The notes under the pieces are model-generated. The model was given only the letters and a program-made list of their open reading frames with translations. It searched no databases and was not told where the DNA came from. This document shows, in pieces, positions 1 through 63,545 of a stretch of 64,000 bases of DNA (position 1 is its first letter; each line of letters opens with the position of its first letter). This DNA comes from Haliotis rubra. Lineage: Eukaryota. The position numbers and the translations under genes are program-made. The stretch is from the NCBI RefSeq assembly GCF_003918875.1, contig NW_025767360.1, forward strand, positions 186,001 to 250,000, read 5' to 3'.

Positions 1-2508
1 AAAATAAGACAATACCAGATGTTGATGAGCAGATGATGAGCAAATCCAAGTCCATTGTTCACATGACAAAGCAAGAGCACAGACGATACAAATAAATAAC
101 ATATTGCATCATTGTTGTCACGGATGATTCACATTTAGTATTGTCAAAACTGACATGTACCAAAGTTGATGTCTTGAAAATTGTAACCTTGATCAAAGAC
201 CATTGGAGCAGGAGTCGAACGACGCTTCTTCAAAGAAAGACCATGTTCGATCATACCTCAAACGTTGTAAACTTTTACTACCAAGGCTGGAGCTGCTGAA
301 ATATTAATATTGCTTGACACGAAAGAGAAGTTGACTGTTAGAAAGTCATCCCATTTATCATACGGTCTAGTGGGAAATTATTACCTAAATGAGTAGTTCA
401 GTTCAGTGCTATACCTGAATCATACGTTCAACATATTTGAGAGTTTACTTTGTCAGTCCCAACATAAATTGTGAATAATATTCATAATATTACCATCAAG
501 AAAAAGTGTGCAGAAGGTTCCACATGGGAGGCATGTGTTTTTACTCAATGCTTTACACCACAATTTTACATAGATTTATCATTAGGGAAGGGCAACATTT
601 TCCAATAATAGAAATCATCTTAAAATACATGACCGATATGTTTGTGGCAGTGTGATGTCACAGTGTCTTGGCACCCAACAGAAGTGCAATTTGCATCATC
701 AGCTGCCAGGTTCCTATGACAGAAAATAAAAATATATGGTGTCCGTGCTGTGGAATGAAACTGTTTCTGGTTCATGAAAATGTGCAATGTCGACGTAATA
801 TCTTTCTGAGAAGATTTAACATTGTACTTATCAGAGATTTCATATGACTGTCGCGTTTGAAATGTTTTGATAAATATGTTTTTAAATATATAGATAGCAC
901 AATCGTCAACGGCTGAAGTGTAAATCCAGCTAGGGTCCATGCAGTGGTCCTCGGTGCGGTAATGTACTTTCAGTTGTTGGCGATCTGTAGCTTGTTTTAT
1001 ATACTGGACAAAATAAGTTAGGGATATTGGTATTTTTATGATTGATATTTCAACAATGTGTCAATGAATAAATACATCATTATTCATAATTTCAAAATTT
1101 ACATATATCCCTAACTATTTTTGTCTAGTATATGTTGTATTGCAAGTGGTTTTAGATTTACATGCTAGTTTTGCTTTTCTGGTTGTTTTAATGAAATACT
1201 GCCGGTGTGAAAAGACTAGTCAGTCACGACGGCCCATTCTTATTGGAACACTAATAAACCTGACTTTGGGTCTCAGTCTGATCTGGGCGATACCGGGACG
1301 AGTGAAGCTTCATTTGCAAACATTATAGTTGACATTTCAAGACATTGTTTAATAAGGTGTGACAGTATCGGGTTTTTATGTGGTTATTAGTAAACAAGGT
1401 GTTCATTAAATCCGCTTTTCTGTTATGATCAGCCAATCAATCATTGAAATTATTAAAGAAATAACCCGGTCAGACCTTGCGAGGATGAGGCTGTGTGATA
1501 ACTCGCCTCGCTTAACAGGCTGCATGAGTTGAATACTCCCCAAGGAGCTGCGTTGGTTAAATCAATGCCAGAAACAAGACATCCGTTGATCAAGGAAACA
1601 TTCCAGCGCTTTGAGCATGTACTAGTTGCGTGGATATGTGCGCTATATAAATATCCTATAATAATAATAATTCAATTATCCTATATGAAGGCCAAAACAA
1701 ATACGCACATAAACAAGATCATAACTTTCAAAATAAAATGTTTACTTAAAGCACTTCGATGGGTTACATAGCAAAGTCTTTTGGCTACTCAGCTTTTGAA
1801 GTATCACTTTATCATCATAAAATTCCACTTCAACTTTCATTTCAAGTGCTGCCGGGATCGCCCTCAAGTCTTCTCATACACACTCACTTAAAATAGTCAA
1901 TACTTTCCGGGGAAGGTATCCAACAATAAACTGTTGCTACATTGTGTAATACTTTCACCTGGTTATTCTCACCGGTGTGTTTATTTCCTTTCAGCTGAAA
2001 CTGGCTTTCTTAATTTATTGCACCATGTCTGTTCACTTCTTCTCAGCAGGGCAAGTTGTACAATGTGCAAACTAACGTCCTGTTAGTGCAGGGCAATTTA
2101 TCGTTGTGTGGCAAACCTCAACAGTGACGCGCAGACAAACACCAGAGTAAGGATAAGAGTTGAGTAGTTCTTGGTGGATATCCTTAAATTTATGATAGGT
2201 GCAAGGTAACAAACAGCATGTTTGAACTCACGACAAAACACAGACATGCATGTATTGAGAATTTTAACGAGACAAGTCTGTACATGGTTGTTGGATACCG
2301 GGCTTTGTTGAAGGAGGTCTGTAAGTAATCTTCGCTCTTGATTTTATTATTTTTTGGGTTGACTGCATTCGTATTTACACATTGCTTACACATTCGAAAA
2401 AAAAATAAACTAAAGACGTGAAGAATTCTTCAGTACATTCTTCTATTTCTATTGTGGCCTTATGTTAGCTCAATGTTGTTGTTGATGGGTTAACTGAATA
2501 GTGTTATG

Positions 2509-8410: not shown

Positions 8411-8465
8411 GGACAAACGCGCAGTAGACATTAAACAGAGGACAAAATTTAAAGCGGTTAAAGAA

Positions 8466-11400
8466 ATGCAGCTATTCAGAGTTCCACTTTTGCTACCTTT
8501 ACTGCGTAAGTTAACAGCTATGAAAAGTTACTCCCGTTTCACTGCGTAACGATAAGTGTAAAGTTAACATTTAAGATTTAAATTATTTAGCAGTAGAAAT
8601 GGTAATTATATATGTTATGTCCGTTTCTGCTTTCTCAGTTTTGTCATGCTGGGCAGTTTTCGATTGCGTTTATGGAACTTGTTCGGGTGACAATCAGTGT
8701 CTTAATGGCGGAAAATGCGACTCAGCCACTTCCAAGTGTGACTGTACCGGTACTGGATATGAGGGTGAAACGTGCCAAACTGGTAAGTCAAAGAAATAAT
8801 TTACTAGTATGAGTAAGAAATCCCCACTCATGTAATTAAAAAAAAATACGTAGGTACAGATAACGATCATATGATGCTGTCACAACAACATTTTGTACCA
8901 GACGACTATCCGGGTAAGATTTCGTCTCCAGCAGCCTATAATTGTAAAATGAAGCCACTAGCGGGATAGGAAGGCTACGCTCGGTGAGATAACTGGTGTA
9001 CATAAATGTATTCCAAACTCATATACTGATGTGAATGATGTCAGTGGTAGGTCTGACTGGTCCCGATTCAAACAGATGGCACATGGAATATTGATGTGTG
9101 GGGTGTTACGATAGAGCGCGCCTGCATTTTTTAGTAACTCAAATACTTCGCAGTGACGTATACGTTTGTCTTCAACTTTACTGGGAAGCAGAAAATCAAA
9201 AATGTTTTTTTCATCACATAAACTTCATTATGAGAAGTAAAATCGTTTCATTTTCGTGTTCATTCTTGGTAGACATTGATGAGTGCACAGAAGGTGATCA
9301 TGACTGTGATACCAACGCCGACTGCACAAACACTGACGGGTCCTTCACCTGCGCGTGCAAGCCTAACTATGCTGGAGATGGAAAGACCTGCATAGGTAAA
9401 TGCATACACGGTTTTGTAAATTGCTGTTATTGTAGCATCTCAAGGTTTGCTTAAATTTTGTGTTCTGTGAAACGAAACTAGGCAACTCCATGTATATGAC
9501 TGAACGACGGGAACGCACATAGAATCAACTAAAAGAGAACTTTTGGATGAGTACAAGAACTGTAATGAGGTCTTTGAATGGCATTTAGAAGTGATCCACA
9601 CAAGGAAGATATATGTTCTCTGCCCCATACCATTCATTCGTCTGATAAAGGAGTAGGGACATACTCTGAAATTGTGTTCCTCATAATAAAGAATTTGACA
9701 TTCTCTTCCTTAAGAATTGTAATGTAGCAAAGGTAATGCCCAGACACAATTACAAAACTTCTTTGAGTGACGTTTAGAGGTTGGTGTGATGAACAAAGAG
9801 AAAATCACTTGCTTGATATCGGTGTTAGTAGCTACACCGAAACGTCGCCAATATTAATATTAAGAACTTGTATTTCCATAGAACTCTCCTTGTTGTACAA
9901 TTACAAACGCTGTAGTAGCTTAGTATCACGTATCAGTAGTTCAGTCACAGAAATTTATTATTAACCATGCACGAGATTGTTAAATGTATTCCCGATGGAA
10001 TAGAGACATAATTTTATGAGAACGAGTGCAGTAATTGTATGATTGTTGCTCTGAGCAAAAAATGGAAAAAGCGCAAAAAGTCAAGTCATTGTAAAATATG
10101 ATGGTCAGTGTGTAAGTACTAAGACTATATGATTTTGTTGCACACGTAAATATATATTGAGTATCAGTGTTATTTGTCAAACCAAACATTCTGTAGAGGT
10201 AAAGTACTTTCGTCCCTGTCATGACATGTTGGGTCCATTAATCTCTGTCGTTCATACAGTTGCTGTGGTGAAGTAAATAATATAGTTGAATATAGACAAG
10301 CTCCTGGTTATTGAATGTGGAAATGGAATATATTCCGATATTGAGTATATGTTTTGAATCCTTTCAAAAAGCATTTGCAATAATAAAATGATTGCACATT
10401 TCTTTTTGTTTTAGCTGGCGTGTGTTCCGCAGATGGCAACGAATGTTTAAATGGTGGAACATGTAATATCCCATCAGACGGGACTGCTAGTACATGTCAA
10501 TGTGCAGATGGATATACTGGTAGCCTTTGTGAAAGAGGTAAGTACTATATATAAATACGTCTTCTATTTTATTCTTAGTAGTAGAAATCATCAATAAAAT
10601 ATTTCATTTGTGTTTTCGTTCGCTATATACTAACAGTGATGTGTAATTTTGTATTGAACTTAACTGAGAAACAATACACTAAAATGCATTTGCTCGTCGC
10701 CATGACATAAACTTCATTGGTAGCCGTAATTTCTTTTCATTTTCGTTTTCATTCTTGGTAGACATTGATGAGTGCGCAACCGATGCTGATGACTGTGATA
10801 CCAACGCCGACTGCACAAACACTGAAGGGTCCTTCACCTGTACATGCAAGCATGGCTACGCTGGAGATGGAAAAACTTGCATAGGTAAATGTATACAGTG
10901 TAAACGTTTTGACGTTGTTGCATGCCAGTTGGATTTGTCTAATGTTGATGCTATATCAAACGAAAGTATCACGCTTCTTGTATAGGAGCATGCAGAGCCA
11001 GCTTCTGAAAAGAAAAATAGAATGGAATCTAGTCACTGTTATAATTCAAACTTAAACATTGTCGAACGTAGATTACAATGAAATTATCATTTCTACCGTT
11101 ACAAATGCACATCGACCAGCAGATCCATTAAAACGTGTGAGCAATTAAATCCACCAAAACTGCAAGTGTACCAACATAGCAACCTATGAATCCATCTTGA
11201 AACTAACCTGATCAACATTGAACGATATAAGATGGTCACAATTCGTTTTTCCTCCTTCTTTAGCGGGTGTGTGTTCTGCGGACGGGGATGAATGCCTCAA
11301 TGGAGGAACATGTGACACAAGCAGCACTCCCACCAAGTGTTCCTGTGCGGATGGTTACACGGGGGACACCTGTCAGAATGGTAAGGAAACATTCTTTTTA

Positions 11401-12119
11401 CATGATACGAATCAAAAATAACTTTTGTGCCGGCAATATTCCATCAGTTCCAATCTTTGTTGTCAACTTGTATCAACTTTTTAGATACAATCGAGCATTT
11501 TCTTGACACGAAGTTGTTTGATCAAAGTTACATTTAGTGCCTCAGTATTAAAGCTTCCAAACATTATCAGGTAGACAGGCATTAAAGCTTTACAACATGT
11601 TAAGGTAGACACGTAGCATTTCCAAATGTAACACACGAGTGATATGAATTAATGCAATTTCGTATATTGATGTGTACATGTTACCGCCTGTATCATGTAG
11701 AACATTGCTCAGTGTTCGAAATAGTCTTAAAATTTTGCTAGCCAGTCGGGCTAGCTATGCCTGAAAGTTACTAGTCCACAAAATAATTCACTAACCCGAA
11801 ATTCGAATGAAGTCGCGGCTTTCATCATTAAACTGATAATATGATGAACATTTTTATTAAGCCTTAGTCTTGCATGATTCATAAGTGTATTCAAGCTTAA
11901 CAGTCGCAGAGAGTCATATATTTACATAGTGCAATAGACTCTGCTTTAACCAGATATTTCTTATGAATGTGAAAAAGATTTTGTTGCTTTGTACGAATTC
12001 CACCACATTCGAATGTTATTATTTGTCCTCATACAATCTCTATTGCAGGTGGAGGTACGGTGACGATTTCCGCTTACCTAATGGGCATGACTGTTCTTAC
12101 TTTCTTCGTCATCCTGTGA
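8466..12119 (+). CDS. Secreted, putatively GPI-anchored 5-EGF protein (EGF-cbEGF-EGF-cbEGF-EGF), 246 aa, 7 exons
   Basis: Exons 8466-8505, 8639-8782, 9273-9395, 10415-10537, 10762-10884, 11264-11380, 12049-12119 sum to 741 nt. All introns are GT-AG, phase 1, and the frame is open. Signal peptide [26 protein letters not shown]. Five 6-Cys EGF modules, two with the DIDEC..CxNxxGSFxC calcium-binding consensus. The C-terminus [25 protein letters not shown] is hydrophobic with no cytoplasmic tail. Confidence 0.85.
8905..9110 (+). mobile_element. Ancient degraded copy of the retroposon in intron 2 of the EGF genes
   Basis: tatccgggtaaga..cagcagcctat..gcgggatagg..ggaatattgatg; orthologous at ~41965-42175 and ~51995-52205. 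Confidence 0.5.
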
Positions 12120-12420: not shown

Positions 12421-12555
12421 CTCGCTATAGGTAAAAAATAAAAATTCCCCTGTATGCTTTCGACCGCTGATGACATGTTACTGATGACGTGGAGCTGTCT
12501 CCCAGTGACCACTGACAAAGAGTAAATGTTGTCTACTTTTACTTTACAGTGACAA
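12421..12555. promoter_or_regulatory. Conserved non-coding element downstream of EGF-GPI gene (core CTGATGACGTGG)
   Basis: TGATGACATGTTACTGATGACGTGG..CCCAGTGACCACTGAC..GAGTAAATGTT is conserved at 45215-45350 and 54742-54875, and partly at 29670-29710 and 48321-48375. Confidence 0.55.
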
Positions 12556-12849
12556 ACAATTCAAGTTTAAAATAATCTGAAGATATATGATGTATACATT
12601 ATTCCCTGATATTTGTAAATCTTTGCGAATAAACTTCACCTGCAATGTTTTAACTGTCTTTGAGAATTTATTTAATGACGTTTTAGCAGGCGCCTATTGG
12701 AAGTTAGTGACCATTACCACGTATCATATTCAGTGTGTAATACCATACAGCGATGAGAAATTGATATAACTGATTTTATACAAAGTAAATATCAACGCAA
12801 CCGTCAGAAGTTTGAAGCAGAATGACGGTGACACGTATTAGATTTGAGA

Positions 12850-20942: not shown

Positions 20943-22360
20943 TACACTCTTCAAAATAAAGAAACTCATAGGTAATTTTGCGAATATAAGCCCCATGTAA
21001 CTGCGGCAAAAAAACAAAACAAATACAAAAATACTGTGTTTCTTTCCGAACATCATCTTTGTGTAACCGTAAACAGCTTCAGCTCCAAAACGCGGCAATT
21101 TTAACGTTTTCCTTTTTTTTAGAAGTTTTTGAAGAAATATTCCTAACAAAGTCACCAAAAAATTCAAGCAAAGCAAAATGCACGTGCGAGTAAACGGGAA
21201 AGCATGCGGTATCCATCACTATAAAAAGGCAAACGTTGTGTTTAATTTTGCCATTAGTTTTTGCTTTGAAAAAAGGAAATCATCATGCCACGACTGACTG
21301 CCGCCATCAAAACATCCCCATTGGTCGCCTTGAAGCTGGAGAGTCGCAGTCTGCACTTGCCCAACATTTCAACATTCATCAGAGCACCATATCTCGCCTT
21401 TGGGATCGTTTCCTGCAGACCAATTCCGCCCAAGATCGCCCGAGAAGCGGCCGTCCAAGAGTAACCACCCAAGTCAAGGACCGCTCACTTCCATCATCGT
21501 CTTGGAAGACTGCACAACGCATCCCTGGTTTGAGGAGATTTTCCTACCAAACTGTCAGAAATCGATTGGGGATATGATCAAACTAGCCGGTTGTCGCCAC
21601 TGTTTTGAGAGACTTCCATCGGCGAAATGGCTTGCGGTGGTGTCGTAGAGTCCGGAACTGGAACCTTAGAAACTAGAGGCGAATCTGGTTCAGTGATGAA
21701 TCACAATTTCTTCTTCACCAGCGAGATCGAAGACAGCGTGTTTACCGTGGGAGAAATTAACGTTTTGCCCCTAATTGCAATCCACTTGTCAACAGATTCC
21801 GTGGAGTCTGTGTCATGGTGTGGGGTGCGATATCCAGCAAACAAGGATCTGATTTAGTGGTGGCTCAGGGGAATTTGATAGCAAATCGGTACATCAACAA
21901 AGTCCTTGGACGTCACATGCTTCAGATTATGGAGCGACAGAGGGAGTTGTTCCAGCATGACAACGCTACTTCACATACATCACGCATCAGGGTCATCTAC
22001 CTTGCCAATTCTAACGTCAGTCTCTTGCCATGGCCTTCCCGATCACCACATCTAAACCCAATAAAACACCTATGGAATGAACTCGATCGACGTGTAGGTC
22101 AGCGTCAAAACACGCCTCAGACACTTCCACAACTGGCAATCATATTGCTGGAAGAGTTATCCAGTGTGTGCCGAGACGGTGCGGAGCAATAATTACTGCC
22201 AATGGTGGCCATACAAAGTACTGACTTTGATGCGACCTTGTGGACTCAAGTAAACAGAAACAAAACATTAAAGGCTGCTGTTGTGTTGGCGAACTCTGTG
22301 TCTATAGATGTGTGATTTTCACCCTTTTACCATTGAAATTACATGAAATAATTGCTCTTA
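20943..22360 (+). mobile_element. Degraded Tc1 element (different subfamily)
   Basis: TIR-like TACACTCTTCAAAATAAAGAAACTCATAGG. Broken transposase 21285-22224 (GRPRVT, FQHDNA, WPSRSPHLNPIKH, GGHTKY*). Confidence 0.88.
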
Positions 22361-22506
22361 AACTAACGCTAACTTATTTATTTTAACATGTGTCTGTAAC
22401 TCAGAAGGTGTTAAGTACATCAACATGGGCTAGGTTTGTCATAGTTAGGAGGGAACAGACTTGCCCTCTTGTGCATGGATGTGTTGCAAGTTTAGGCATG
22501 TTACTA

Positions 22507-24036
22507 TACTCTCCCAAAAAAGAAACGCATCATGAAAATAGCAATTTCATGTAGCAATGAATTAAAACGTGATTCATTTTACAAAAGGCTTTGCTCTGTT
22601 TATGAGTGCTGTGGTGTTTATGTTTTGAAACATCACAACAAAACGCACCATCCATAAAATACCCGTATTTAACAACATGATTTTTAATTTCGGCGTGTAC
22701 TGTCACAGAATACACAATTCACATGCAATGCACGTGAAAGTTGGGGGACAGATAGTCTCAATGATGGGTATAAAAAGGTTGATCGCTGTCTGTCGATTAT
22801 TCACTGTATTTGGAATATTGTTGACGAACGCCAAATGCCACGTCTAAATGAAGCCAACCGTCATATCGCCATTGGTTTGCTTCATGCTGGCCAGTCTCAA
22901 CGTGAAGTTGCCCGACGCATGAATGATCACCAAAGCACCATTTCACGGCTCTGGGAGAGATATCGCCGGCAGAATTCGGTAGCAGATACCCCTCGTAGTG
23001 GGGCGACCTCGAGCGACCGCTGCGGCGCAGGATCGCTACATCCGGGTACATCACCTGCGTCATCGAACAGCTACGGCGACCAGTACCGCTCAACAAATAG
23101 CCGGATTGAGGAGGCTTTCTGCACAGACCGTCAGGAACAGGTTGAGAGAGGCTGGTTTACGTGTCAGAAGACCTTATTTTGGCCCTGTGTTTCGACAACA
23201 ACATCGTCGTCATCGAGTTCAATGGTGCACCAGCGTTCAGGCCTGGAGCCTACCGAATTGGCGTAGAATCTGGTTCAGTGATGAATCACGATTTCTATTC
23301 GAACGACGCGATGGAAGAATGCGGGTGTACAGACGTCGACGTGAACGTTTCGCCGACGCTTGCGTTCCCCAGGTGGACAGATTCGGCCGGGGCAGTGTTA
23401 TGATGTGGGGAGCGATCACCTGCCGTAGGAGAAGTGATTTGGTGATGATCCAGGGCAACCTGACAGCTCAACGGTACTGTGACGAAATCCTACGCCCACA
23501 CCTCCTTCCAATCATTGATCGCCAGAGGGAGTTGTTTCAACACGACAATGCCAGACCACACACAGCACGTCACACTAGAGACTTCCTCCACTACCACAAC
23601 ATCACTGTGCTCCCCTGGCCCTCAAGATCACCGGACTTAAACCCGATCGAACATCTGTGGGATGCCCTGGACAGGCGGGTGCGACGCCGTAACCCTCAGC
23701 CCCAGACACTTCAACAACTCGCACAGGCACTACAGAGAGAGTGGGCTGCGATTGGGCAACACGAGATTCTGAGACTTATTCGTTCGATGCCGAGGCGATG
23801 CCGTGCAGTTCTGGATGCCCACGGTGGTCACACGAGGTATTGACTTCAGCGCCACCACACGTCTCCATGTGACACTCAAACTGACTTTTCTCGAGTTGGT
23901 GCCAAAGGCGGATAAGTCTGCATTCCCAGTGTGCAATTTCGCTATATTTCATTGACTCATAAAGCCTACAAGATGTTTCAAAATAAACATTAAAAAAAAG
24001 TTGAAATTCCTATATGCGTTTCTTTTTTGGAGAGTA
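22507..24036 (+). mobile_element. Full-length Tc1-family DNA transposon (DD34E), 1530 bp
   Basis: TIR TACTCTCC(C)AAAAAAGAAACGCAT at both ends; TA target duplication at 22505-06 and 24037-38; transposase inside. Confidence 0.95.
22835..23843 (+). pseudogene. Tc1 transposase with a single +1 frameshift (335 aa if corrected)
   Basis: MPRLNEANRHIAIG HTH, GRPR, FSDES, QHDNA, WPSRSPDLNPIE (34 residues between D and E), GGHTRY*. Extra G at ~23000. Confidence 0.93.
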
Positions 24037-27243: not shown

Positions 27244-28702
27244 TACTCTCCCAAAAAAGAAAGGCATATAGGAATTTCAACTGTATTTTTATGTTTATTT
27301 TGAAACATCTTGTAGGCTTTATGAGTCAATGAAATATAGCGAAATTGCACACTGGGAATGCAGACTTATCCGTCTTTGGCACCAACTCGAGAAAAGTCAG
27401 TTTGAGTGTCACATGGAGACGTGTGGTGGCGCTGAAGTCAATACCTCGTGTGACCACCGTGGGCATCCAGAACTGCACGGCATCGCCTCGGCATCGAACG
27501 AATAAGTCTCAGAATCTCGTGTTGCCCAATCGCAGCCCACTCTCTCTGTAGTGCCTGTGCGAGTTGTTGAAGTGTCTGGGGCTGAGTTTTACGGCGTCGC
27601 ACCCGTCTGTCCAGGGCATCCCACAGATGTTCGATCGGGTTTAAGTCCGGTGATCTTGAGGGCCAGGGGAGCACATTGATGTTGTGGTAGTGGAGGAAGT
27701 CTCTAGTGTGACGTGCTGTGTGGGGCCTTGCATTGTCCTGTTGAAACAATTCCCTCTGGCGATCAATGATTGGAAGGAGGTGTGGGCATAGGATTTCGTC
27801 ACAGTACCGTTGAGCTGTCAGGTTGCTCTGGATCATTACCAAATCACTTCACCTACGGCAGCTGATCGCTCCCCACATCATAACACTGCCCCGGCCGAAT
27901 CTGTCCACCTGGGGAACGCAAGCGTCGGCAAAACGTTCACGTCGACGTCTGTACACCCGCATTCTTCCATCGCGTCGTTCGAATAGAAATCGTGATTCAT
28001 CACTGAACCAGATTCTACGCCAATTCGGTAGGTTCCAGGCCTGAACGTTGGTGCACCATTGAACTCGATGTCTACGATGTTGTTGTCGAAACACAGGGCC
28101 AAAATAAGGTCTTCTTGCACGTAAACCAGCCTCTCTCAACCTGTTCCTGACGGTCTGTGCAGAAAGCCTCCTCAATCCGGGTATTTGTCGTGCGGTACTG
28201 GTCGCCGTAGCTGTTCGATGACGCAGGTGATGTACCCGGATGTAGCGATCCTGCGCCGCAGAGGTCGCTCGAAGTCGCCCACTACGAGGGGCATCAGCTA
28301 CCGAATTCTGCCGGTGATAAATCTCCCAGAGCCATGAAATGGTGCTTTGGTGATCATTCATGCGTCGGGCAACTGCACGTTGAGACTGGCCAGCATGAAG
28401 CAAACCAATGGCGATATGACGGTTGGCTTCATTTAGACGTGGCATTTGGCGTTTGTCAACAATATTCCAAATACAGTGCATAATCGACAGCTTGTGATCA
28501 ACCTTTTATACCCATCATTGAGACTATCTGATCCCCAACTGTCAGGTGCATTGCATGTGAATTGTGTATTCTGTGACAGTACACGCCGAAATTAAAAATC
28601 ATGCTGTTAAATACGGGTATTTTACGGATGGTGCGTTTTGTTGTGATGTTTCTAAACATAAACACCATAGGAGCAGAGCAAAGCCTTTTGTAAAATGAAT
28701 CA
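27244..28702 (-). mobile_element. Second copy of the same Tc1, inverted, 5' TIR lost
   Basis: Near-identical reverse complement of 22570-24036. 3' TIR at 27244 with TA. Confidence 0.93.
27438..28445 (-). pseudogene. Tc1 transposase, in frame (1008 nt) but with AGA->TGA nonsense at 27849-27851
   Basis: ORFs 27849..28481 and 27438..27842 are in the same frame, separated by one stop. Confidence 0.92.
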
Positions 28703-28845: not shown

Positions 28846-29323
28846 TATTTTAGCGATATGGAAACGTAACCTTACATATGCCAAAAAGAAAGAAGGTCGG
28901 AACATAGAAACATTTTACTACGTTTAAACAAATCTGGTTTGAGTTTGAAACATGTCTTGTTGACTTTTTATATATGTTCATGATCAAAACCAGACGATCA
29001 TCATAAACATAATTCTGATGAACAGTTCACGCAAATACACTTTTATCAAATAGACATGGCTGAACTTTCATTGTGTGTGGTTTCATGAGCCTTAACTTGG
29101 AAGCATACGAATTTGTGTTTGTGCTGACCTTATCACATTGCCTGGTCCTCGGGATACGTGGGATGTCTTTAACTTTGACTTTTTACCCAAGGTTACTGAC
29201 GTCGATATCTATACTAATCTTAGTAGTTGACATAAATAATGCACGCTATGCGTTTGCAGTGAAACCTGTCCGTATTAAGTTCACGTAATTACTGTCTATG
29301 TTAAATTTTCCCTATTTTCGTAG

Positions 29324-29406
29324 ATGCTGGAGTTTCCACTCTGAGGAAGTGCAGTGCGATCGCTTTTCTCCTTCCCCTCACCCTGGTGGCCTTTCTCATT
29401 GTTTAA
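29324..29406 (+). pseudogene. Orphan phase-1 terminal exon encoding a GPI-anchor-like signal
   Basis: Acceptor ttttccctattttcgtag, then (x)AGVSTLRKCSAIAFLLPLTLVAFLIV*. Same phase and design as the other tails, followed by the conserved downstream motif at 29670-29710. No EGF exons found nearby upstream. Confidence 0.6.
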
Positions 29407-29668
29407 AGCAGCCGTCAAACATGTATGCAGTTGTTTGTAACTGTTTATTCTCTTTTTATCATTAAGTTTGTGTTATTCCAAGCAATTACATTTCACTGAA
29501 GATTGTACTTATTATGTTTAATCTTGCATTCTCTGAAATAGAAGTAAAATATCAACATTGACAATCATTGGGGTTTCGTGTGCAGTGTTACATGTATTAT
29601 GTCAATGCTACTGCAAACTGGCTAAGGGGTCACAAAATCACTGTTAGAGTACATACAATTAGGCAATG

Positions 29669-29710
29669 CTGATGACATTTTCTGATGACGTGGGCCTCCG
29701 AACACTGACG
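29669..29710. promoter_or_regulatory. Conserved downstream element, copy 2
   Basis: ctgatgacattttctgatgacgtgggcctccgaacactgac; core 276 nt after the orphan GPI exon stop. Confidence 0.5.
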
Positions 29711-32700
29711 TATAGAAACTGCCATCAACCCTTTAGTCACTTTGACAATATATTCTACTGTTAATTTGTACATTCAGAAGATGCATGTTGCATGTACTTA
29801 TATAACAGGAATTTCGTCCCTAATAAACGCATTATAGTAATTACTGAGAGTTGTGTTTTGGAGCATTTATTACTTTGAGTCCAATGACCAATCCACGACA
29901 ATGAAACATTCATGTCACAGGCCTTGACCATACAGTTCACTTTATTTGCCTCTTTCAAACAGTGCTCACTTGAATTCCACAAAGAGATATACTGGAATGA
30001 ATGAAACCTCCCAGGTTCAGAACAAATTATTTAAAATGAAAGGAAATGTGATGTGAAGGTTATTCAGTGAATACCATGTGCAAGAACTTCCTAATTTATA
30101 ACGTCGTGAGAACCTTCGACATTTTTGGACATCCTCAGGGGCGCAAATGACCCTCTCCTTACTGATCTGATTTTCAGTACATATCAGAATCAGAATTTCT
30201 GCTCAAATTGACAAATTCAATACATGGGAATTTGGCCGAGGCGTTCAACGTAACCTACGGGCCTATCTATGAATTCATATCATCATCATCAATAAAAAGG
30301 AAAGCACTTACCGATCACCAGACTCACCTACGTCGACGCACGTCGTTGTATACATAAATTATCTTGTACGCGACGTTAAATCCTGTTTTTACACCTGACA
30401 TCACCTTGTAAATTGCACGTACCTTTGCATCAGCTACACGATCATGAGTTAGGAACTACTTAAGGCAACTGATACATGTACTCATTGCTGTTCCAGGATC
30501 TTTGATTTTCCTTGACCTCATTATGGTGCTGATTGTTCCTGTGATTAAGGGAAATGTGTAAACCTTGGTCATCCTTTGTAATGGAATAACTGGGGGTTCA
30601 CCTTGTACCAAATCTGCAACTCTGCTATGCGTAAACACCGGTGTTACAGTTTCCAATAATGGACGGATTGTAAGCATGTCCTGTTCTACCGGTAGTAACT
30701 TCATTTCCAGAATAGCGTGTATTTGAAATACACTGACGAGACGTTTGGGGGTCTAACTGACATTTGTATACATATTGGTTGGCGTACAAAGAACATGAAC
30801 ATAAGCTTACAATCAAATCACAACTGGTTTGTGAATCACTTTAGAATAGTAAACAGTGACTTGATGACATCCTTGTACGATGCGAGCCTTCCGGTGATTC
30901 GCGACATCAACTTTTAGAACAGGATAGAAGTGGTGGAATCATTTTCCTTTCACGGACCTGTGTTTTTCGCATGATCGGTTCTCTGTTATCCATATAAGAA
31001 TCACTCCTCATCTGGATAACTAACATGTCTATAATCAGAGTTGAGAATGTGCACTGCATTTCACAATATTATTATGTCTGCGAACCACAACAAGTAACTG
31101 GCTAAATTGTTAAGTAACATCACGTGACAAGGTTTAAGAGAATATAAGCGACAAAAAAATATTTATGAAGAAATCTTTGACAAAACAGAGTGGATTTGAT
31201 GATTTCAGCTATATCATGAGGACTTGTTTATGAATCAATACCCAAAGTAACATAATAGCAGCTGTTGATGAGCAGATGAGCGTTTCAAGACTTAAACATC
31301 CAAGTCTATTGTTCACATGACAGAACAAGAGCACAGACGATACAAATGAACAACATATTGCAACATTGTTGCCACGGATGATTCACATTTAGTATTGTCG
31401 AAACTGTCACGTACCAAAGTTGATGTCTTGAAAATTGTAACCTTGATCAAAGACCATTAGAGCAGGAGTCGAACGACGCTTCTTCAAAGAAAGACCATGT
31501 TCGATTATACCTAAAACGTTGTAAACCTTTTCTACCAAGGCTGGAGCTGCTGAAACATTAATCTTACTCGAAACGAAAGAGAAGTTGACTGTTAGAAAGA
31601 TAAAGCCATCCCATTCATCATACGGTCTTGTGGAAAATGTTTACCTTAACGAGTAGTTCAGTTCAGTGCATTGGTGGAAGGCATATTTGAATTATATCCG
31701 ATTATCGCTATACCTGAAGCATACGTTAAACATTTTTGAGAGATTGCTTTGTTAGTCCAAACAAAGAATTTGAATAATATTCATAAAATTAACATCAAGA
31801 AAAATTGTGCAGAAGGTTCCACATGGAAGGCATGTGTTTTTACTCAATGCTTTACACCTCAATTTTCCATAGATTTATCATTAGGGAAGGTCTACATTTT
31901 CGAATAATAGAAATCATCTTAAAATATATGACCGATATGTTGGTGGCAGTGTGATGTCACAGTGTCTTGGCACCCAACAGAAGTGCAACTTACATCATCA
32001 GCTGCCAGTTTCCTATGACAGAAAAATAAAAATAGATGGTGTCCGTGCAGTGGAATGAAACTATTGCTGATCATGCAAATTTGCAATGTCGATGTAATAT
32101 CTTTCTGAAATTAATATTCTGTTTATTAGAGATTTCATATGACTGTTGTGGTTGAAATGTTTTGATAAATATGCTTTTTAACATATAGATAGCACAATCG
32201 TCAACGGCTGAAGTGTAAATCCAGCTAGGGTCCATGCAAAAAGCGAACGTACAGTAAGACCCCATAGTCCTCAGTGCGGTGATGTATCTTCAGTTGTTGA
32301 CGATTTGTAGCTTGTTTTATATGTTGTATTGTCTGTGGTTTTAGATATACATGCTAGTTTTGCATCTATATCTGTGACTTCTGGTTGTTTTGAATGTAAT
32401 TCTTAAACATGGTTTTATGTTCTCGATTTATGTGTCATGAATGTATAACTTGTTTTCACCAGTATATGGCTGAAATACTGCCGATGTCAAAGGGTATAGA
32501 CAATCACGACGGTCCATCCTGATAGGAACACTAATAAACTAGACTTTGGGTCTCAAAGTATGATCTAGGCGATACCGGGAACGAGTGAAGCATCATTTGC
32601 ACACATTACAGTTGACATTTTAAGACAATGTTTAACAAAGTGTTACAGTATCGGAGTTTCATGTGGTTATCAGTAAGCAAGGTGTTCATTAAATCATGTT

Positions 32701-45214: not shown

Positions 45215-45350
45215 TCACTGTAGATAAGAAGACAAAATTCTTCCCTGGTTCCCTTTAGACCGTTGATGACATGTTACTGATGACGTGGACCTGTCCCCCA
45301 GTGACCACTGACACTGAGTAAATGTTATCTACTTCTTGTCTGTAGTGACA
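45215..45350. promoter_or_regulatory. Conserved downstream element, copy 3
   Basis: Aligns with 12421-12555 although the adjacent GPI exon and UTR do not align by eye. Confidence 0.55.
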
Positions 45351-48320: not shown

Positions 48321-48375
48321 TTACTGATGACGTGGATGTTTCTCCCATTGGCTGACACAGATTAAAGTTACCTGT
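48321..48375. promoter_or_regulatory. Conserved element, diverged copy 4 (no adjacent exon recognised)
   Basis: ttactgatgacgtggatgtttctcccattggctgacacagattaaagtta aligns with the core of the other copies. Confidence 0.45.
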
Positions 48376-52373: not shown

Positions 52374-54447
52374 TGCTGATGACTGTGACACAAACGCCGA
52401 CTGCACAAACACTGAAGGGTCCTTCACCTGTACATGCAAGCCTGGCTACGCTGGAGATGGAGAGACCTGCACAGACCCGCTTTCAAAAAAGCATTTGCAA
52501 TAATAAAATGATTGCACATTTGTTTTAGTTGGCGTGTGTTCCGCAGATGGCAACGAATGTTTAAATGGTGGGACATGTAGTATCCCATCAGACACCACTG
52601 CTAGTACATATCAATGTGCAGCTGGATATACTGGTAGCCTTTGTAAAAGAGGTAAGTACTATACATAAATACGCCTTCTATTTTATTCTTAGTAGTAGAA
52701 ATCATCAATAAAATATTTCATTTGTGTTTTCGTTCGCTGTATACTAACAGTGACGTGTAATTTTGTTTTGAGCTTAGCTAAGAAACAATACACTAAAATG
52801 CATTTGCTCGTCACCATGACATAAAATTCATTGGTAGCCGTAATTTCTTTTCATTTTCGTTTTCATTCTTGGTAAACATTGATGAGTGCCCAACCGATGC
52901 CGATGACTGTGATACCAACGCCGACTGCACAACCACTGAAGGGTCCTTCACCTGCACTTGCAAGCCTGGCTACGCTGGAGATGGATAAACTTGCATAGAT
53001 AATTGTATACAGTGGAAACGGTTTGACGTTGTTGCATGCCAGTTTGATTTGTCTAATTTTGATGCTTTATCAAACGAAAGTATGACGCTTCTTGTATAGG
53101 AGCATGCAGAGCCAGCTTCTGAAAAGAAACATAGTACGGAATCTAGTCACTGTTGTAATTCAAACTTAAACATTGTCGAACGTAGATGACAATGACATTT
53201 TCATTTGTACCGTTACAAATGCACTTCCATTATTAGACAACAGAGCGACCAGCAGATCCATTCAAAAGTGTGAGCAATTAAGTCCACCAAAACTGCAAGC
53301 GTACCAACATAGCAACCTATGAATCCATCTTGAAACTTTCCTGATCAACATTTAACGATATAAGATGGTCACAATTCGTTTTTCCTCCTTCTAGAGGGTG
53401 TGTGTTCTGAGGACGGGGATGAATGCCATTAATGGAGGTACATGTGACACAAGCAGCACCCCCACCACGTGTTCCTGTGCGAATGGTTACACGGGGGACA
53501 CCTGTCAGAATGGTAAGGAAACATTCTTTTTACATGATACGAATCAAAAATAACTTTTGTGCCGGCAATATTCCATCAGTTCCAATCTTTGTTGTCAACA
53601 TGTATCAACTTTTTAGATACAATCGAGCATTTTTTTCTGACACAAAGTTGTTTGATCAAAGTTACATTTAGGGCCTCAGTATTAAAGCTTGCAAACATTA
53701 TAAGGTAGACAGGCATTAAAGCTTTACAACATGTTAAGGTAGACACGTAGCATTTCCAAATGTAACACACGAGTGATATGAATTACTGCAATTTCTTATA
53801 TTGACGTGTACATGTTACCGCCTGTATCATGTAGAAAATTGCTCAGTGTTCGAAATAGTCTTAAAATTTTGATAGCCAGTCGGGCTAGCTATGCCTGAAA
53901 GTCACTAGTCCACAAAATAATTCACTAACCCGAAATTCGGATGAAGTCGCGGGTTTCATCATTAAACTGATAATATGATGAACATTTTTTATTAAGCCAT
54001 AGTCTTGCATGATTCATAAGTGTATTAAAGCTTAACAGTCGCAGAGAGTCATATATTTACAATATGACTCCATGACAATTCACTTGGAGATTTACTGTCC
54101 CGACTGGATTTTTACTCGCCACTGGCTAGCGGGACAGTGGCTATTTCGAACACTGGAATTGCTACTCTTGCCTTGTGTTTGTGACGGGTGCGAACACCTG
54201 GTATAATCACTGTTTAAAATGATTCCTGAACACATGTTCATTATATAGTCGGAATAGTGCAATAAACTCTGCTTTAACCAGATATTTCTTATGAATGTGA
54301 AAAACGCTTTGTCGCTTTGCACAAATTCCACCACAGTAGAATTTTATCATTTGTACACACACAATCTCTACTGCAGGCGGAGGGACAGTGAAGATTTCCG
54401 CATACCTAGTGGGGATGACTGTTCTCACTTTCTTCCTCATCCTGTGA
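52374..54447 (+). pseudogene. 5'-truncated pseudogene of EGF gene 1 (exon 3-7 homologues)
   Basis: 52374-52474 has lost its acceptor and donor by deletion. 52529-52651 keeps splice sites but has Cys4->Tyr. 52876-52998 has AG->AA, TAA at 52986-52988 and GT->AT. 53395-53512 has a +1 frameshift. The terminal GPI exon 54377-54447 is intact. No signal-peptide exons. Confidence 0.85.
53844..54155. mobile_element. hAT-like MITE (left part only at 11710-11926)
   Basis: 15-bp TIR CAGTGTTCGAAATAG; 8-bp TSD (a/g)aattgct. Confidence 0.85.
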
Positions 54448-54741: not shown

Positions 54742-54875
54742 TCGCTGTAGGTAAAAAGATAAAATTTCCCCTGTATGTTTTCGACTGCTGATAATATGTT
54801 ACTGATGACGTGGAGCTGTCCCCCAGTGACCACTGACACAGAGTAAATGTTATCTACTTTTTACCTACAGTGACA
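54742..54875. promoter_or_regulatory. Conserved downstream element, copy 5
   Basis: Duplicate of 12421-12555; core at 54802-54813. Confidence 0.55.
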
Positions 54876-61902: not shown

Positions 61903-63545
61903 TACTAAGTCAAAAAAGAAACTTCACAAAATGTCATTTGAAAAATAATGAATAATTTTTTTCTGATGATACATCTATGTATCCGAAATGGGATCCCTAT
62001 CTTTCGACTCTAGAAAAACCCACTCAAACCCATCCATTCGTCATGCAAATGACGTTAGTGCCAAATCAGGTTTTGCACGTGCAGTCAATCACGTGATCTT
62101 CGCATCGAAGTTTTCTTCATATGCACGTGTTTGCATTGGCCTCAAGAATTGAAAAAAACACTTTTAAACCACAGTTCTAAAGGTACTTGAAATGCAACGA
62201 TTGTCAAATGTGCAACGTGAACGTGCCGTTGGCATGTTGCAAGCGGGAAGATCAGTTATTGACGTCGCAAGAGCAATGGGATGCAGCCGTCGTACTGTGT
62301 ATGACTTGCGAGGTCGTCTACAACAAACTGGCACCACTTCTGATCGCCCAAGGTCGGGTCGTCCACGTGTGACGTCACGAGCAGAAGACCGTCAAATCGT
62401 CCTACGTCACCTACATGACAGATTTCTGCAGGCTACACGAACCAGGGCTGAGATGTTTAGAGGTCGACTGTCCTCACAGACCATTCGAAATCGGTTGTGG
62501 GCTGCCAATCTCCATTCTCGACGTCCATATCGTGGGCCAATATTGACGTCGTTTCATCAACGCCAGGGGCGGTGGGGTAGCCTAGTGGTTAAAGCGTTGG
62601 CTCGTCACGCCGAACACCCGGGTTCGATTCCCCACATGGGCACAATGTGTTAAGCCCATTTCTGGTGTCCCCCGCCGTGATATTGCTGGAATATTGCTGA
62701 AATCGGCGTAAAACTAAACTCAGTCAGTCAGTCAGTCAGTCATCAACGTCAACGTCAACGTCTGCTGTGGGCCCAACGTCACCTCCGATGGACCCAGAGA
62801 GACTGGAATCGAGTCGTCTTTAGCGATGAATCCAGGTTTACCCTCAGATTCGCGGACGGCAGGCATAGAGTCTGGAGACGACGTCGTGAACGGTATGCCC
62901 AATGTTGTGTACAGGAAGTCGACAGATTCGGGGGCGGAAGTTGCATGGTGTGGGGTGCTTTCTGTGGGAACAACCGTTCCCGACTTCTGGTCATCCGTGG
63001 AAACCTCACAGCTGCTGCTTACCGCGACCAGGTGCTCACCCCCTGAACTCGTTCCTTTCATGGCGGCTCATGGCCCAGGTCTACAGTTCCAGCATGATAA
63101 TGCTCGGCCGCATACCGCGATGTTGACACGAAATTTCCTTCAAAACGCTTGAATCAACGTCATGGACTGGCCATCGAGGTCCCCTGACCTTAATCCAATT
63201 GGCGCTGCCTTGCAAGAGCAATGGCGCAGAATCCCCAACCACGTGTTCACAAGCATCAGGCAGTCGATGAGGAGACGGTGTTTGGCAGTGGTGAATGCGC
63301 GGGGCGGCCATACACAATTTTGAACTGAGAAATTTCGCATTTTTATTCTTGTGACTTGACATTCTGTATACCCATGTTTTGGAACGGCGGTGTAGCCTAA
63401 TGGAACTGATTATGGCACTGTCAGTGTATCGAGTACATCACACAGATCTCAGCAATGAAATAATAACAATTTAACCATCTTACCATCTCTTGTTCTTTTA
63501 TAGTGCCCTGAAGAATGAATGTGAAGTTTCTTTTTTGACTCAGTA
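61903..63545 (+). mobile_element. Tc1 element (third subfamily) with nested SINE
   Basis: TIR TACT(A/G)AGTCAAAAAAGAAACTTCACA, TA duplications at 61901-02 and 63546-47, empty site at 18848-49 in the paralog. Broken transposase 62192-63323. Confidence 0.93.
62566..62739 (+). mobile_element. tRNA-derived SINE nested in Tc1 ORF
   Basis: TSD tcatcaacg(c/t)ca; (CAGT)n tail. Confidence 0.92.

Follow-up and report, generated by a model that had tools for sequence, protein, structure and literature searches.

A conserved base-paired domain downstream of Haliotis multi-EGF genes is a candidate structured 3′UTR element

Results

The window that we analyzed, a 64,000-nucleotide stretch of contig C2470 (186001–250000) in the genome of the abalone Haliotis rubra, contains three genes with EGF exons, at 8.6–12.1 kb (EGF gene 1), 41.4–44.9 kb (EGF gene 2) and 52.4–54.4 kb (EGF gene 3). 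The family encodes small secreted proteins in which a signal peptide precedes two to five modules of the EGF or calcium-binding EGF type and the C-terminal tail is hydrophobic. The database proteins that match the exons in the window are RefSeq proteins of H. rubra itself; the family members in RefSeq are complete proteins that have six cysteines in each EGF domain, and a search of protein databases, for which exon 1 and database proteins served as queries, found no specific relatives of them outside Haliotis. Exons encoding hydrophobic tails end in TGA or TAA, at stops located at 12119, 29406, 44895 and 54447, and that of EGF gene 1, a GPI-type tail exon, spans 12049–12119 (+ strand) and ends in TGA. 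EGF gene 3 (52378–54447) is broken by a TAA nonsense codon at about 52985, in a calcium-binding EGF exon, and by a frameshift at about 53391–53426 in its last EGF exon. Fragments of Tc1/mariner-type transposases (DDE_3, HTH_Tnp_Tc3_2) lie between the gene units at 21815–23843 (+), 27849–28481 (−) and 62192–62653 (+).

The original prediction singled out a 12-mer, CTGATGACGTGG, at five positions of the window, and we found it exactly there, at 12481, 29682, 45277, 48324 and 54802, in every case on the + strand. Five copies compare with 0.24 expected by chance, a number that none of 100 shuffles reached. Four of the copies lie 362, 276, 382 and 355 nt past hydrophobic-tail stops, distances that had been claimed at the outset and that we reproduced from the stops at 12119, 29406, 44895 and 54447. 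The description of the 12-mer as an element downstream of every GPI exon is correct in that each GPI exon is followed by one, but the copy at 48324 has no GPI exon, and neither a tail exon nor an EGF exon was found upstream of it.

To learn whether the block around the 12-mer is confined to this gene family or dispersed, as the original prediction had proposed, we searched the 1.38-Gb H. rubra genome with the 135-nt block (12421–12555) as the query, which returned 28 copies. A pattern search added shorter variants of the block, and a covariance model, with which the best 150 first-pass candidates were scored, brought the number to at least 38, spread over six contigs; copies that have diverged further may be present as well. 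These copies fall into a long form (type A, 28 copies), a form with a short apical part (type B, six copies including that at 29682), a single intermediate copy on contig C469 (type X, locus L035) that links types A and B, and a relic form (type C, two copies including that at 48324). Because the type C copies share 96% identity, we counted the two as a single lineage. Seven further loci, distributed over five contigs, have EGF exons 5′ of the block in the same orientation, and most type A and type B copies are preceded at 270–430 nt by a hydrophobic-tail ORF (up to 604 nt in locus L017), such that all of the checked loci other than those of types C and X are positioned behind multi-EGF exons or a hydrophobic-tail ORF. 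Because the copies track the exons and tail ORFs of the family, the block is not a dispersed repeat, and the suspicion that it might be part of a high-copy transposon does not hold for an element with about 38 copies that is linked to the family in all but types C and X.

Two further occurrences of the 12-mer were set aside as chance matches. One is at a locus on contig C2391 (L036) and the other is in a satellite, a 34-nt tandem repeat at C2362:119345–119688 (− strand), in which the same 12-mer is followed by CTGAC and which is unrelated to the EGF family. A mollusc SINE domain was likewise rejected as the source of the block, since the motif is absent from PMC4758252 and the copy number also speaks against it. 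Near one type B copy (locus L030) we observed tRNA-like matches at 128–186 (−) and 1864–1922 (+) that score 28.6 and 20.1 bits, just below the Rfam gathering score, and that are probably SINE heads. One of the Tc1/mariner fragments in the window lies immediately 5′ of the type B copy there. No EGF exon was detected 5′ of the tail exon that belongs to this copy (29289–29406), an exon that is conserved in all six type B copies, and the type B unit may be a gene remnant or part of an unrecognized gene.

The block out-conserves its surroundings. Between subgroups of type A, whose tail exons and UTRs can no longer be aligned, identity is 0.86–0.95 from −20 to +60 around the 12-mer and 0.2–0.5 in the flanks, including the tail exon, which bears out the earlier suggestion that the block has outlasted coding sequence. 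The same trend is seen in other abalones. For four orthologous proteins of H. rufescens and H. cracherodii there is one element per gene, 385–435 nt past the end of the coding range, which scores 88–95 bits and has an intact 12-mer; in ortholog pairs the identity of the element is 0.88–0.95, as compared to 0.5–0.8 for the flanks.

At the core of the block is a hairpin of about 65 nt, made up of an 8-bp helix (P1a), a single bulged G, a 5-bp helix (P1b), an internal loop, a 4-bp helix (P2, GUGG with CCAC), a helix of about 3 bp (P3) and a C-rich apical loop of 5 nt. In copy 1, the copy with the 12-mer at 12481, this inner hairpin occupies 12469–12533 on the + strand (−20 kcal/mol, z −2.4), with P1a formed by 12469–12476 and 12526–12533, P1b by 12478–12482 and 12521–12525, P2 by 12489–12492 and 12509–12512, and P3 by 12494–12497 and 12503–12506. 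The TGATGAC that lies upstream of the 12-mer is the 5′ strand of P1a and pairs with ATGTCATC downstream, for which reason we rejected its reading as a second C box. Folded singly, copies of the inner hairpin have energies of −16 to −20 kcal/mol and z scores of −2.4 to −3.4. Across 34 distinct sequences, 93.5% of the pair cells are paired, as compared to 35–50% when the partners are shifted by 1–3 columns. Compensatory changes are found in P1a, where pair 10–72 of the alignment is GC in 11 sequences, GU in 10 and AU in 10, and in P3, where pair 37–43 is GC in 16 and CG in 4. A third compensatory change is in P1b, whose pair 18–65 is AU in 29 sequences and UA in 5; types A and C have the former and types B and X the latter.

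The letters that never vary in these copies are concentrated at the internal loop of this hairpin. The 12-mer (12481–12492 in copy 1, + strand) begins in the last two pairs of P1b, runs through GAUGAC on the 5′ side of the loop and ends as the 5′ strand of P2, while a second invariant motif, CUGAC (12512–12516, + strand), supplies the last base of P2 and the 3′ side of the loop, which reads UGAC and then continues with variable bases. The distance between the two motifs varies from 28 to 36 nt. An 11-mer within this region, TGATGACGTGG, is invariant in all 38 genome copies, which were found without requiring it, and in four copies from the two other Haliotis species. The leading C of the 12-mer is replaced by U in two copies, in which pairing is kept as U.G. 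That the invariant letters can mutate is shown by a decayed copy (C2470:16722–16803; positions 1501–1582 of locus L047), in which a base is inserted before UGAUGA and CUGGC replaces CUGAC.

Both strands of the internal loop read 5′-UGAC-3′, and their antiparallel juxtaposition gives U.C, G.A, A.G and C.U. The loop could thus accommodate tandem sheared G.A pairs that stack under P2, with pyrimidine mismatches at the sides, a geometry on which covariation is silent since the letters of the loop are invariant. RNAalifold prefers a shifted Watson-Crick register for the loop, in which one A.A mismatch remains and a U is bulged, and in one H. cracherodii copy a C replaces the U that is bulged in that register. 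The type C relic in the window (48321–48366, + strand) retains only P1b and the invariant letters of the loop, along with a portion of P2, and has lost P0 (the outer helix described below) and P1a; this copy, with its 12-mer at 48324, no longer folds (z +0.85).

The inner hairpin is nested within a 17-bp outer helix, P0, which also encloses a C-rich linker. In copy 1, a type A copy of subgroup G1 located 3′ of EGF gene 1, the whole domain as defined by homology to the type A alignment spans 12422–12552 (+ strand), and the 5′ strand of P0 (12422–12438, + strand) pairs with its 3′ strand (12536–12552, + strand), in agreement with the limits of 12421–12555 that had been drawn for the block earlier. 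P0 of copy 1 is weakened by an indel, and the minimum-energy fold of this copy on its own is consequently different. In the type A domain that follows EGF gene 2 (45215–45348, + strand; −47.4 kcal/mol), P0 is formed by 45215–45231 and 45332–45348 around an inner hairpin at 45265–45329 (z −3.4). In the type A domain that follows EGF gene 3 (54742–54873, + strand), P0 is formed by 54742–54758 and 54857–54873, and P1 by 54790–54803 and 54842–54854; this domain is fully intact in spite of the broken gene that precedes it. The type B domain, with its short apical part, spans 29612–29747 (+ strand), with P0 formed by 29612–29630 and 29728–29747 and the inner hairpin at 29670–29727. Types B and X differ from type A in the sequence of P0 and are alike in architecture.

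Taking P0 to P3 together (37 pairs), 94.8% of the cells are paired in 32 sequences, as compared to 35–50% in shifted controls, although the paralogs are related and shuffle controls accordingly overstate the significance. Within P0, pair 12–138 covaries between UA (15 sequences) and CG (5), pair 15–135 is found as four pair types (AU 13, GC 7, GU 6 and CG 3), and pair 19–131 covaries between GC (18) and AU (11). By our count, roughly six to eight of the compensatory changes are independent. The segment that links P0 to P1a (12439–12468 in copy 1) and its equivalents in other copies contain a moderately conserved C/U-rich patch, UUCUCCCCUG or similar; this patch and the apical loop of the hairpin, which is likewise rich in C, are possible candidate sites for poly(C)-binding proteins.

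An element of about 131 bp with a 17-bp terminal inverted repeat and an internal palindrome, and with Tc1/mariner fragments nearby, has the appearance of a foldback (MITE-like) transposon, and we considered whether the domain is simply a relic of such an insertion into an ancestral 3′UTR, with P0 as the terminal inverted repeat and with no present function. There are, however, only about 38 copies, of which all that were checked except types C and X sit behind exons or tail ORFs of the one family, no target-site duplication is evident in the flanks, and compensatory changes maintain the pairing, both between paralogs and between species, in spite of flanks that decay. We regard a relic of this kind as a very improbable explanation.

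P0 also bears on the reading of the domain as a set of splicing signals, in which two YAGs would be acceptors of a terminal 3′UTR exon or alternative exon and CUGAC a branch point, with the hairpin controlling how they are used. In one RefSeq model, XP_046559769 (P0020), the YAG in the 5′ strand of P0 is used as an acceptor, a purine-rich run follows the first YAG, and CUGAC lies 28–34 nt before the second. Against this, both YAGs are accounted for as complementary strands of the palindromic P0, the first YAG is lost in three copies and the short frame that follows it is not conserved. Moreover, the donor in XP_046559769 is weak, the gene is frameshifted in an EGF exon, and we found no other protein that shares its C-terminus. 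At the locus of this model (L041, C446:2638043–2648042; positions 8413–9042) the tail exon is read in another frame and the model ends 10 codons past the YAG; its splice into P0 is possibly an annotation artefact. We place little weight on splicing as the explanation, about as little as on a transposon relic. That the domain is instead a coding exon, on either strand, we regard as barely credible. Several copies do have an open + frame that ends at a TAA they share, and there is an open minus frame too, but three copies carry 1-nt indels in the apical loop, the stops fall at differing places, subgroup G1 is in a different frame, and 12 consecutive bases are invariant, third positions included.

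We next consider the position and strand of the domain. An AATAAA or ATTAAA hexamer is present in all type A and type B copies, 130–180 nt past the 12-mer and 50–70 nt past P0 (AATAAA at 12628–12633, + strand, after copy 1), whereas hexamers upstream of the block are sporadic. Since a hexamer lies 3′ of every type A and type B domain, the domain lies within the presumptive sense 3′UTR and would be transcribed as part of the mRNA. The original prediction had offered, as one of two interpretations, a 3′-end or RNA element at the junction of two convergent genes. The nested, covarying fold and its position between stop and poly(A) hexamer support the RNA element; the convergent gene is not supported, as a scan of minus-strand ORFs downstream returned only Tc1/mariner transposase fragments or ORFs with no Pfam match.

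G.U pairs are tolerated in RNA, here that of the + strand, and they outnumber A.C by 32 to 17 pair-by-lineage occurrences overall (13 to 2 within the inner hairpin), an excess that mildly favors the sense strand. The consensus structure is as stable on the + strand (−29.0 kcal/mol) as on the − strand (−28.8 kcal/mol), and the minimum free energy is slightly better on the minus strand; as the energies do not separate the strands, the strand call rests on gene context and on the ratio of G.U to A.C.

The other interpretation offered originally was that of a DNA element. On such a reading, the core of the 12-mer, GATGACGTGG, is a UPRE/CRE-like site for XBP1, ATF6 or bZIP factors of the CREB3 family that serves as a 3′ enhancer of secretory-pathway genes. 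The sequence TGACGTGG is indeed present within the core, and the two bases that precede it presumably also fit published bZIP motifs. Furthermore, the core, which about 42 copies from three species carry without alteration, is more invariant than anything else in the block, it survives in the type C relic despite the loss of P0 and P1a, and the host genes encode secreted, GPI-type proteins. A bZIP site does not, however, predict that 37 pairs around it are 94.8% paired and show compensatory changes, that G.U outnumbers A.C, that a second invariant motif, CUGAC, follows at a variable distance of 28 to 36 nt, or that the position before a poly(A) hexamer is fixed. In addition, TGACGTGG occurs in the window only at the five copies and is found 5′ of none of the three EGF genes. 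Weighing these observations, we consider an enhancer of this kind unlikely.

The fold could also be that of a small-RNA precursor, either a miRNA-like hairpin or a snoRNA-like particle, which is released from the 3′UTR and whose mature or protein-bound portion corresponds to the invariant letters. The hairpin is about 65 nt long, its 5′ arm is most conserved over the first 15 nt, and UGAUGA and CUGA are C and D box sequences. Its dimensions argue otherwise, with arms of 29–31 nt, a loop of 5 nt and energies of only −16 to −20 kcal/mol, and in type B the hairpin is even shorter. Helix P1b extends to the C-like box, whereas the D-like box is five or six unpaired bases away from it; there is no guide, and Rfam gave no match to the block, at the gathering score in the window or at E ≤ 10 in five loci. 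An animal pri-miRNA hairpin, for which a stem of about 33–35 bp and a loop of at least about 10 nt are required, was rejected on account of the several internal loops, the 29–31-nt arms and the 5-nt loop. A small-RNA precursor of any sort therefore seems to us very unlikely.

Discussion

Taken together, our analyses favor, with a probability of roughly 0.55, the reading that the block is a base-paired domain of about 130 nt in the sense 3′UTR of a Haliotis-specific, tandemly arranged family of multi-EGF genes with GPI-type tails, in which the invariant internal loop is a predicted docking site for a protein. The element is most likely a new structured 3′UTR regulatory RNA rather than a stress-response enhancer, a function that we infer from the fold, its conservation and its position. 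In the mechanism we propose, the nested helices would hold the invariant internal loop in place, the loop thus positioned would serve as a docking site for an RNA-binding protein, and the docked protein would set mRNA stability, translation or localization for the whole EGF family. The sequences that look like a bZIP site and a pair of splice acceptors make better sense as, respectively, a loop and the paired strands of a helix.

The element out-conserves the tail-coding sequence of the genes that carry it, and its pairing is maintained by compensatory changes across paralogs and in three abalone species. As it is common to at least some 28 genes of the family, a single factor could control a whole repertoire of surface proteins, and the motif is a compact RNA that lends itself to testing. 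To our knowledge, conserved structured 3′UTR elements with a defined protein-docking loop are few, the main examples being SECIS, the IRE and the sites for Roquin and Staufen, and there are almost none in molluscs. Our searches of the literature returned only primers for the 12-mer and nothing relevant on abalone EGF/GPI genes or on stem-loops in abalone UTRs.

Several known RNAs resemble parts of the domain. The Staufen-binding site of ARF1 mRNA reportedly has a 19-bp stem that closes an apex of about 100 nt, and P0, a long perfect or near-perfect stem of 17 bp that closes an apex of about 100 nt in a 3′UTR, may be comparable to it. Recognition by Staufen is not sequence-specific, however, and so leaves the invariant letters of the loop unexplained. 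The hammerhead ribozyme, including the discontinuous type found in the 3′UTRs of rodent Clec2 genes, shares with the abalone element the order CUGAUGA, helix, GA and the location in the 3′UTR of a tandemly duplicated gene family. In the abalone element, though, GAC takes the place of the invariant GAAA and there is neither a stem I nor a strand with a cleavage site; given the absence of GAAA and stem I, and of any Rfam hammerhead match, we rejected this assignment.

Box C/D RNAs and kink-turns have in common with the element the presence of UGAUGA and CUGA on opposite strands of a loop beside a helix, with the potential for G.A and A.G pairs. The likeness to the C box (RUGAUGA) and the D box (CUGA) is one of sequence only (cUGAUGA and CUGA). 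Unlike in a box C/D RNA, five or six unpaired bases separate CUGA from P1b, there are no guide segments and no C′ or D′ boxes, and the 24 nt between the C-like and D-like boxes form a hairpin and hence contain no guide region of 10 nt or more. We therefore rejected a box C/D snoRNA, in view of a terminal stem that does not flank both boxes, the lack of a guide and the lack of an Rfam snoRNA match. A canonical kink-turn was rejected as well, as neither of the two registers, when examined by hand on the alignment, fits a 3-nt bulge together with a GA that abuts the C helix.

A further parallel in arrangement is with SECIS elements, in which an AUGA/GA internal loop under an upper helix forms tandem sheared G.A pairs that are bound by a protein of the L7Ae type; kink-turns and domain 2 of the hammerhead use the tandem sheared G.A motif too. 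The abalone element is likewise a 3′UTR hairpin, in which the internal loop between a lower helix (P1b) and an upper helix (P2) has AUGA on its 5′ strand and GA on its 3′ strand. It differs in that its upper helix is interrupted after 5 nt, in that there is no unpaired AAR (or CC) 11–12 nt past the core, in that the EGF genes have no in-frame UGA for selenocysteine, and in that the hairpin sits inside a further helix of 17 bp. In type A there is an unpaired A 5 nt past AUGA and a C-rich loop of 5 nt, and in type B there are three pairs above the core and a loop of 10 nt. With an upper helix that is short and interrupted, no in-frame UGA and no Rfam SECIS match at E ≤ 10, membership of the SECIS class was rejected. 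A more specific version of the docking model is nonetheless conceivable, and we put it forward tentatively as doubtful, namely that a SECIS-core-like tandem G.A loop, displayed by the nested helices, recruits a protein of the L7Ae family, or another specific protein, and so co-regulates some 40 GPI-anchored EGF proteins. Regulation of this kind could operate through translation at the ER, mRNA localization or decay, and it would be the first family-wide RNA regulon of its sort described in molluscs. The abalone element is thus one that resembles the families built around G.A motifs without belonging to them.
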